Source: Salpingoeca rosetta
Lineage: Eukaryota; Protista; Choanoflagellata
Assembly (NCBI GenBank): GCA_033442325.1
Contig: JAWQFM010000030.1
Location: 1 to 33,200 of the forward strand
Reading direction: 5' to 3'
DNA length: 33,200 nt
Part shown: positions 18,438 through 21,400 of the stretch, piece by piece
Position numbering within the stretch: the stretch's first letter is position 1
Layout of the letters: the number at the start of each line of letters is the position of its first letter
Program-made: the position numbers and the translations under genes
The notes under the pieces: generated by a model
What the model was told of the DNA's origin: nothing
The model's database searches: none
Seen by the model: only the letters and a program-made list of their open reading frames with translations

Positions 18438-21400
18438 TCATGAGGAGGCGGAGCCGCCGTGCTCCTTGGCCAGGCGCAGAAGCTTAGCGGCCTTGCCGAC
18501 CTTGACGCCGGCATCCGTGAGCATGACGCGTGTGAGCCCACCGTCAGCCACCAATTCAGCCAAATCTTCGAGGGTGTCGATGCCATGGTCAAGCAGCGCT
18601 GATTCAACGTGCGGCAGCAGCGAGTGGCGGTCGAGCCATTGAATCAGCTCTGGTTCGAATGTGGTTGAGGACGAGGGCGATGGGGTGGCAGGTGGTGGCG
18701 TTGAATGGGCCGTGGCAGTGGAGATCGAGGAAGATGACTGCACGGCAGACAAGTTAGAGGGGTCGAGTGAGACACTCGTGCCAAGTGGAAGAGAGAAAGC
18801 GCACGCTTCCATATCTGCAGACATGCACACACACACACACACAAACACACACACACACACACGCACGCACATACGCGCACACACACACACACACACACAC
18901 ACAACCATACCTGCGTGGAACGACGTGCAGCTGCTGGCCCCTGAGCTGCTTGCTCCTCGCTCCTCGCGGAGACGACGACCTGGCGCACCTTCTCTGCAAT
19001 GTTGCGCAGCTGCAACGTGCGGTCCACACCGGCATCCATCGCAACCACGGCGTCAATGTCAAATAGCGACAGTACCACTTCACGGACGCTTTTGTGCTGC
19101 TGGGGTGGTGGCAGGTGCAGCACTTGCGAAAAGAACTGGTCCAGCGCTGACGTCGTGTTCTTGCTCACAACATCCGGCAACTTCGTTGCCAGCCGCTTCA
19201 GGCGGTCAAACGAGTCGTACTCGCTCACTTCCGCCCTGCTCATAACATGGTGGTTGCTGTCGTGCCAGCCACTGCCAATGAAGAGCGGAACGATGCGGCG
19301 GAGGTGGACCTTGTCTGGATGCTGGCGAGCAAGCTGCTGCAACTCCAGCATGGCCATCCACTCCAACAAGACGTTATCGCACGTGTCAGTGTGGCCGAGC
19401 GAGCGCATCTGATGGATGGCACCGACGGAGACGACGGGGCAGGCGACAGTACTGTTGTGCAGGGCTGTCATGCACGCACGCTTGAAGTTGACGCCTGTTT
19501 CGAGGTTGTTGGCGTCCACAAAGACCACCAAGCCGTGGTGTTCCAACCTTGGGTGAAGGGTCAACACCAGACCTCGGTTGCCGCGTTGCCTGTGACGTGG
19601 TGGTGAATATCGGGATGAGAAAGGAAGAGAGAGGGAAGGAAAGACACCCAGTTCGCACCGTACACACACACACACACACACATGTCCCACCTGTAGCTGA
19701 TGAAGGCGTCGTATTTGTCCTGCTGACCCATAACTGGCAAGAGTGGACCATATTTGGCGACCAGATCCTCTGGTGACAGCAGCTGTGAGCGGCCAACGCG
19801 AAGCGCTTTCTTGTTCGTGTGGTGGGTGTGCACGTCCTCGAAGAACAGCAGTCTCGTGTCATTGAATGGCAGCAGCAACGTGGCCTTGAGCTCGGGGTAG
19901 CGCTGCATGACAGCTGTAGTGATGGTGTCGTACAGCATGTGCAGCAGCGTGCGAGGACGTGCAGTCATGACCTTGATCTTGATGCCGCCAACAGCCGGCA
20001 CGAGCTGCATCTCGATCTCAGCAGCATCCATGAAGATCACGGCGTCTGTGCGGCTCAACATGGGCGGTTCCGTTGCACCGTGCTGCATGTGTGCCATCAC
20101 GCGTGCCAGAACCATCGGGAACAGGCCCTCTGGCAGGAAGGAGGCTTGCTGCGTGTCTGCAATCTTGGCGCTTACACCCCTCTTGAACTCCCTCAGGCTG
20201 AAGGCGACGTAGGCTGTCTTCTCCTCATATCCAACATACGGATTTGCTTGCTGTGCTGCTGCCGTGCTCAGAGTCACCGACGAGGACGCCTGTTCGTCCT
20301 CCAGCGTCATCGGCAGGATGGCTGGGACGAGGTACTGTTGGTGGTGTTGTTGTTGCTGTTGAGGACCGGGCAGCAGCACCATTGGCGCCGTGTACTGGAT
20401 ACACAACCCGTACTCCATCATGAGTTGGAGAAAGGGCTCAACCATGCCACCTTCCAAGCCCCTCCACAGCACATCAAGTAGACGGCGGTGCAGGATACCG
20501 CGGTCAACCAGGTCGTCCCACAGCTGCGCGCCAATGGCCCTTGCCGCACCATCACGCACGTCGTGATGCAGATCAAAGTTTCGGATGACGCGCGTCATCG
20601 TGTCCACCGCCCACTGCGGGCTCAGGATCACATAATCTTCCATGCCAGGCACGCTGTCGTAGTACAACACCATGGAGTACAGGTGCAGGAACTGCAGGCA
20701 GGCCCTCGTCTCCTCACGTGTGCGCAGCCCACACGTGCGTCCAATATCCACCACCTCATCAAAGGTGAGCAGCGGCCGTTTGTCGTCCTTGCTCAGTGCC
20801 ATCAGTTTGTCGTAGAGATGGAGGTATGGCACAGCCACCTCCTGGCTCACGTACTCCTGCGCTAAGGCTGTGGAGGAGATGGACTGGCGCAAGTCCTGAA
20901 TCATGGGGTCATTGATGGACTTGGTGTTGTCGACGGGCCAGAACCACAGACCATGCTTGTCGTTGTGGACGACGCCAGGGAAGGCCGGGTTGTGGCGCAG
21001 GCGGCTGTAGATGTCGCGTGATATCTGCTCATGCTGCTTCCTCTCGTTGATCTTGTCAGCGAAGGTGCCGACGATGAGGACGGGTGCGCCCTTGGCGTGG
21101 AGGTGGAGGGCGGAGAGCCAGTGCTCCATAAACTCCCACGATTCAGCCCGCTTGCTCTTGTCTTGGTGCAACAGGTCCTCCATTGAGAACACCAGCAGGT
21201 ACACCGCGTACCTGTTTGCGGGTGGGTGAAGATGGGGGTAAGGAGGGGAGGGTGAGCGGAAGTGGGGTTGTTGAGGGGAGCGGTGATCAGCACACACACA
21301 CACACACACACACACACACACACACACACACAATACACGCACGCAAGCACGCACACACACACACACACACACACACACACACACACACAAATGCATCCTA

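Follow-up and report, generated by a model that had tools for sequence, protein, structure and literature searches.

The window analyzed here is a 33,200-nucleotide stretch of the choanoflagellate Salpingoeca rosetta (GenBank assembly GCA_033442325.1, contig JAWQFM010000030.1, positions 1 to 33,200 of the forward strand). Its minus strand carries the gene for the annotated protein F2UT82 (PTSG_11382, XP_004987618.1, P0009; 1301 amino acids), a ROCO protein that ends in a TIR domain and a SAM domain. The TIR domain is probably a working NAD+-processing enzyme. Residue E1052 is the predicted catalytic glutamate (Glu), and the predicted products are cyclic ADP-ribose (cADPR) and nicotinamide, as for F2UB80, a paralog with 86.5% identity. 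All coordinates of the gene are positions in the whole window, and the gene is read on the minus strand.

The alphaC glutamate and the assayed paralog

The putative catalytic Glu is encoded by GAG at 19361–19363 and corresponds to domain position 85 and to residue 76 of the second TIR exon (exon 2). It lies in the alphaC motif CDNVLLEW (19358–19381). An earlier note on this DNA described a spliced TIR domain with this motif, and the reading, the 101-nucleotide intron and the splice junction all match the annotated F2UT82. The minus-strand reading also gives the Glu codon at the exact position named in that note (19363–19361). The domain is present where the note placed it, at 19250–19720, but this interval contains only its first two thirds. 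The helical extension of the domain runs to approximately 18950.

Hurieva et al. (bioRxiv 2026, 10.64898/2026.04.20.719644, Sorek lab) expressed 154 Glu-bearing eukaryotic TIRs in Escherichia coli and followed cADPR isomers by liquid chromatography-mass spectrometry. Salpingoeca rosetta is one of the unicellular eukaryotes that they name as having TIRs that produce cADPR. Row 33 of their Table S4 lists F2UB80 of S. rosetta with a length of 1352, a TIR at 1034–1255, catalytic residue 1118, and "yes" for both activity and cADPR. Their Figure 3 (panel 3B) sets the wild type against the catalytic mutant, and the abbreviations in its legend include LRR, Roc and COR.

F2UB80 is PTSG_12359 (P0007), and its TIR exon is identical (100%) to the genomic paralog L008. 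In the alignment, E1118 of F2UB80 is the Glu of CDNVLLEW and is equivalent to E1052 of F2UT82. Residues 968–1189 of F2UT82 are identical to the tested F2UB80 construct at 192 of 222 positions (86.5%), with no change in the betaA strand, the BB loop or the alphaC motif. Both proteins are encoded in the same genome and share the architecture Ank/LRR-Roc-COR-TIR-SAM. F2UB80 is nevertheless a separate paralog on another contig, and the 30 residues that differ are found mostly on the alphaA and alphaB surfaces and in the C-terminal extension. The comparison of wild-type and mutant activity that was proposed for the F2UT82 TIR is already effectively done on this sister gene, with the predicted result.

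The earlier note favored NAD+ cleavage or the synthesis of a signaling molecule over a scaffold role of the TLR type. The first part is supported through the assayed paralog. The contrast itself is blurred, because the TIR of human TLR4 has the Glu and makes cADPR (Hurieva et al., 10.64898/2026.04.20.719644), so that "enzymatic" and "TLR-type" do not form a clean dichotomy.

In the same study, NAD+ was not depleted by most of the cADPR-producing TIRs, even when they were expressed overnight, and the exceptions listed do not include S. rosetta. The NAD+ depletion cell in the F2UB80 row of Table S4 is empty. For the isolated domain, the general absence of depletion among cADPR producers favors signal production over NAD+ depletion. 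The alternative is a SARM1-like executioner, in which the full-length oligomer would use up NAD+ and kill or arrest the cell, with cADPR as a by-product. Several likenesses point in this direction. Among the PDB sequences the SARM1 TIRs are the best relatives, and their BB loop and alphaC are very similar. Like SARM1, F2UT82 has an attached SAM domain, and in the assay of Hurieva et al. SARM1, too, yields cADPR as a major product (10.64898/2026.04.20.719644). Against these stand the lack of depletion by most cADPR-making TIRs, S. rosetta being no listed exception, and the empty cell for F2UB80, both of which concern the isolated domain. Such an executioner is unlikely.

TIR fold and position of the glutamate

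The profile of an alignment of 24 complete family TIRs was searched against the PDB sequences. Its best matches are human SARM1 TIR chains (24 bits, E 2e-4); plant TIRs and the TIR of Hydra Toll-receptor-related 2 rank below them. In the HMMER alignment to chain 7knq, which keeps the native numbering, profile positions 3–88 pair with SARM1 563–645, and domain position 85 (E1052) is therefore placed on SARM1 E642. Table S4 of Hurieva et al. (10.64898/2026.04.20.719644) gives the SARM1 catalytic residue as 642, the E of DWVHKE. The profile segment d-n-v-l-l-e-W pairs without gaps with the SARM1 segment D-W-V-H-K-E-I, so that CDNVLLEW stands opposite KDWVHKEI. In the alignment, the BB-loop segment DANNLETG (19493–19516; exon-2 residues 25–32) pairs with SARM1 DVEKLEAG, including the conserved Gly, and all 24 family sequences share its D, N, N, L, E and G.

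These pairings support the assignment of E1052 to the catalytic position of SARM1 E642. By sequence-profile alignment and by its location in a predicted helix, the Glu of F2UT82 occupies the alphaC position shared by SARM1 E642 and ThsB E85, as the earlier note had proposed for enzymatic TIRs. Hurieva et al. (10.64898/2026.04.20.719644) score the cluster representative F2UPN6 as GLU/yes, with its Glu within 3 Å of ThsB E85 by structural alignment.

The complete TIR sequence was taken from public annotated proteins, and the exon pieces of the window were searched separately. The SARM1 match is significant only with the betaA strand, which was added through the annotated proteins. Exon 2 alone returns only noise from the PDB sequences, and a profile of 33 paralog exons, which lacks betaA, returns noise and a weak partial match to the L6 TIR.

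The AlphaFold2 model of the complete domain has a mean predicted local distance difference test score (pLDDT) of 65.4, and residues 1–43 fall below 50. The modeled E85, together with the alphaC motif, lies in a helix (residues 78–98) at a pLDDT of approximately 80. The top 10 rows of the Foldseek search are all plant TIRs (RUN1, L6, Roq1 and RPS4), with probabilities of 0.92–1.0, E-values of approximately 3e-3 and template modeling scores of 0.4–0.5. All Foldseek E-values exceed 1e-3, and weight was therefore put on the VIA-align Z-scores and the sequence alignment. Plant TIRs fill the first 18 rows of the VIA-align output (Z 7.2–9.7, 119–140 residues, root mean square deviation 3.3–4.0). The SPARTA TIRs follow at Z 6.2–6.9 and the SARM1 TIR at Z 6.1–6.5 over residues 561–700, and unrelated GTPase folds score approximately 5. 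The models support a TIR fold, of the flavodoxin-like alpha/beta type, for the F2UT82 domain, and the structural comparison with SARM1 suggested in the earlier note agrees at the level of the fold.

Several points weigh against an active F2UT82 TIR. The Trp of SARM1 DWVHKE (Trp638) is replaced by Asn in F2UT82. Both AlphaFold2 models, of exon 2 only and of the complete domain, are moderate, with a mean pLDDT of 64–65 and a disordered N-terminus of approximately 40 residues; this low confidence reflects alignments that hold close paralogs only. F2UB80 alone is the assayed member of the pair, and F2UT82 is known from its sequence. The activity of F2UB80 comes from a preprint and was obtained with an isolated TIR over-expressed in E. 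coli. Of the Glu-bearing TIRs in that preprint, just 4 of the 29 that come from unicellular eukaryotes and 12 of the 61 animal ones are active (10.64898/2026.04.20.719644), and retention of the Glu predicts activity weakly. The regulation of the protein, including a Roc switch, SAM oligomerization and an immune role, is something we infer entirely by analogy. The support for F2UT82 activity comes from its near-identity to the assayed paralog and not from the Glu as such.

The paralog family

Exon 2 has matches at 46 places in the genome (55.4 Mb, 68 contigs), and the family includes at least 40 paralog TIR exons. All protein-database relatives are from S. rosetta. Of 33 aligned paralog exons, 32 have an identical CDNVLLEW. 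The exception, L029, has a change from E to Q and a degenerate N-terminus. In the alignment of complete TIRs, the Glu and the motif are invariant (24 of 24 sequences). Between the exon of the window and its six closest paralogs, the ratio of nonsynonymous to synonymous substitutions (dN/dS, Nei-Gojobori) is 0.13–0.34, which indicates purifying selection on the TIR exon. Because the motif is conserved in both sets and the exons are under purifying selection, its retention is more than chance.

The more divergent copies carry CDDVLLKW (three copies) or CHAVLLMW (one copy) or keep the motif (three copies). The copies in which the Glu is replaced are located at C25:1025692-1026417 (two copies, L040), C31:785083-785298 (L041), C4:1058566-1059036 (L035) and C32:29985-30629 (L029), and they read CDDVLLKW three times, CHAVLLMW and CDNVLLQW. 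Judged by sequence, these paralogs may be naturally non-catalytic or may be decaying copies. The neighboring copy L036 (C30:58700-59800), approximately 25.5 kb past the end of the window, keeps ...NVLLEW. Its TIR exon, however, is spread over all three reading frames. The exon has TGA stops and changes frame at least four times, and approximately 150 nucleotides are inserted before the motif, so that L036 is a probable pseudogene. In the annotated protein P0026, the motif region is aberrant (RVDPAVTW) and resembles the L036 locus.

Divergence is mosaic when paralogs L002–L007 are compared with the window at 18911–19588. Between L002 and L004, the synonymous divergence (dS) is 0.054 over codons 1–115 and 0.361 over codons 116–226. 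This pattern suggests gene conversion or recombination among the paralogs.

Conversion of this kind bears on a further alternative, in which the TIR of F2UT82 serves as a scaffold or adaptor without enzymatic activity, or the copy is silent. The Glu would then persist only because of a recent duplication or of gene conversion. The mosaic divergence fits this alternative (between L002 and L004, dS rises from 0.05 in the core to 0.36 in the tail), some relatives lack the Glu or are frameshifted, and the Glu is a poor predictor of activity, as the proportions of active TIRs given above illustrate. On the other side, the frame is intact, dN/dS against the six closest paralogs is low, the gene has a public model, and the predicted catalytic elements are all identical to those of the active F2UB80. 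A scaffold or silent copy is quite improbable, the least likely of the three readings, and an active TIR remains the preferred one.

Conserved catalytic Glu residues have also been described in choanoflagellate SARM1 homologs (Richter et al. 2018, PMC6040629). F2UT82 is not among them, since its domain order is not that of SARM1. More distant TIRs appear in rows 32 and 34 of Table S4 (10.64898/2026.04.20.719644). The Guillardia theta TIR L1IYH1 (226 amino acids) is active, with a similarly long C-terminal extension and the segment ...DHVLMEW..., and an Aphanomyces TIR with ...DNLLLEY... is not active. The alphaC motif D-x-[VL]-L-x-E-[WY] occurs in both, so that the range of this TIR subtype takes in distant protists.

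In a literature search for ROCO and TIR in S. rosetta, no dedicated description of the ROCO-TIR-SAM expansion was found beyond the one tested TIR. At the level of the family, the claim has already been published, and F2UT82 adds to it an intact, selectively constrained member of a known enzyme family. What novelty is left lies in how large and diverse the ROCO-TIR-SAM family is.

Gene structure, domain order and proposed mechanism

The DNA of the window is eukaryotic, and its introns are rich in (GT)n. The upstream exons (22135–23769) encode LRR remnants, ankyrin repeats and the P-loop region of Roc (tblastn of F2UT82 1–309; Ank families on F2UT82 77–162). The following exon (21405–21950) encodes a linker of low complexity together with the N-terminal half of the Roc GTPase (Pfam Roc; 100% identity to F2UT82 288–469). 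The end of Roc, COR-A and COR-B, up to the TIR betaA strand, are encoded at 19691–21216 (Pfam COR-A 65 bits, COR-B 23 bits; 99.6% identity to F2UT82 468–976).

The betaA strand KYDAFISYR (19691–19716) is read directly at the end of this exon, with the same junction in F2UT82 968–976, and pairs with SARM1 DVFISYRR. Its final codon is divided AG|G by the intron. This intron (19590–19690; 101 nucleotides, GT..AG) contains a (GT)n microsatellite, has its donor GT at 19690 and its acceptor AG at 19591–19590, and is found at the same position in paralogs L005, L008 and L033. Exon 2 (18911–19589; 226 codons) encodes alphaA to alphaC, the other core strands and the C-terminal helical extension, as indicated by Pfam, fold matches and identity to F2UT82. 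It opens at 19589 with QRGNRGLVLTLHP and remains in frame to RRSTQ at 18911, adjoining the next GT donor. The exon is 100% identical to F2UT82 residues 977–1202, with the same splice junction in the annotated protein. The last exon (18438–18746) encodes a linker, the SAM domain and the stop codon (18440–18438), and is placed by Pfam SAM_2 (21.9 bits, cut-off 20.5) and by tblastn of F2UT82 1200–1301.

In F2UT82, Pfam gives the order Ank/LRR, Roc, COR-A, COR-B, TIR, SAM from the whole protein and the window exons. The ankyrin repeats are at 77–162, Roc extends to approximately 531 (61.5 bits), COR-A is at 598–768 (63 bits) and COR-B at 824–920 (21.9 bits, under the cut-off of 27). TIR_2 (PF13676) is at 972–1081, and its score is 35.7 bits for residues 968–1189 and 32.1 bits for the full-length protein (cut-off 28); exon 2 without betaA scores 27.7 bits. 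The C-terminal SAM_2 is borderline (21.9 bits on the exon open reading frame (ORF), 17.8 bits in the whole protein, cut-off 20.5), and the SAM region has no significant match among the PDB sequences.

The Roc GTPase is directly followed by COR, which makes F2UT82 a ROCO protein. No kinase family is found on it by Pfam at E <= 0.01, and TIR and SAM occupy the position C-terminal to COR where a kinase stands in LRRK-like ROCO kinases. UniRef labels P0003–P0026, including F2UT82 and F2UB80, as "non-specific serine/threonine protein kinase". This label is misleading, because F2UT82 has no Pfam kinase domain and its output is TIR and SAM; the name was probably carried over from LRRK-type ROCO kinases.

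An LRR-like ORF at 24108–24410 overlaps an assembly gap (N run, 24290–24389), and LRR_6 repeats are found upstream of the ankyrins in paralogs. The ROCO gene probably continues past this gap. The public model begins mid-LRR, right downstream of the N run, and F2UT82 is therefore probably truncated at its N-terminus. Other N runs in the window are at 11624–11723, 16082–16181, 26361–26853 and 29603–30283.

Nearly every intron of the ROCO gene contains a (GT)n/(CA)n microsatellite (18870–18910, 19665–19690, 21270–21400 and 21960–22100). In L005 and L033, the TIR-internal intron is open in frame, so that mechanical ORF lists give misleading, intron-reading "ORFs" of 750–1070 amino acids. These two loci had been considered as intron-less paralogs that would give a contiguous TIR. 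This was rejected, as their introns merely stay open in frame. Just downstream of the ROCO gene, on the opposite strand, a 515-amino acid ORF (16233–17780, plus strand) contains approximately ten tandem repeats of approximately 46 residues (…NGLIYGIP…SVLIIDP.TN..D…) and resembles a beta-propeller-type repeat protein.

The F2UT82 TIR resembles that of human SARM1, which hydrolyzes and cyclizes NAD+, in the alignment of betaA, of the BB loop (D-x-x-x-L-E-x-G) and of alphaC (D-x-V-x-x-E), and in both proteins a SAM domain is present. F2UT82 is not a SARM1 ortholog. SARM1 has the order ARM-SAM-SAM-TIR, whereas F2UT82 (Ank/LRR-Roc-COR-TIR-SAM) has a single C-terminal SAM_2 and no ARM by Pfam. Its TIR core is followed by a helical extension of approximately 80 residues, unlike that of SARM1, and its paralog F2UB80 makes cADPR without reported NAD+ depletion.

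The best structural matches are the plant TNL and TIR-only proteins (RUN1, L6, RPS4, RPP1 and Roq1; Z 7.2–9.7). These share with F2UT82 the catalytic alphaC Glu, the fusion of TIR to an NTPase switch and a repeat sensor, and membership of large, diversifying families. They differ in having an NB-ARC switch and an N-terminal TIR, where F2UT82 has a Roc-COR GTPase and a C-terminal TIR. The reported F2UB80 product is canonical cADPR and not 2'cADPR, and sequence identity between F2UT82 and the plant proteins is only 10–16%. With other ROCO proteins (LRRK1/2, DAPK1, the Dictyostelium Roco kinases and bacterial Roco), F2UT82 shares the tandem of Roc and COR-A/COR-B and the N-terminal Ank and LRR. 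It differs from them in its TIR and SAM output and in having no detected kinase domain.

In SARM1 and plant TNL TIRs, catalysis needs self-association, in which the BB loop of one protomer completes the pocket of its neighbor. By analogy, the active site of F2UT82 would be completed only when its TIRs self-associate through the BB loop. E1052 on alphaC would then act as the catalytic residue, and NAD+ would be converted to canonical cADPR and nicotinamide. COR-mediated dimerization, SAM oligomerization or both could drive the association of the TIRs. Control would lie with the GTP/GDP switch of Roc and with the Ank/LRR part as a sensor of ligands.

A role in immunity or in the sensing of non-self is suggested by the large size and diversification of the paralog family. 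It is possible, though doubtful at present, that the at least 40 Roc-COR-switched receptors, with an Ank/LRR sensor and a TIR-SAM output, form an NLR-like innate immune repertoire that acts through cADPR. The paralogs with K, M or Q in place of the Glu could then serve as non-catalytic partners, like those in the RRS1/RPS4 pair. If this were true, a close unicellular relative of animals would have an NLR-like immune repertoire that relies on another kind of NTPase switch. Salpingoeca rosetta is genetically tractable, and such questions can be tested in the organism itself. The role, the trigger and the cADPR reader of at least 40 ROCO-TIR-SAM genes bear on the wider question of how TIR enzymatic signaling was organized before animals.

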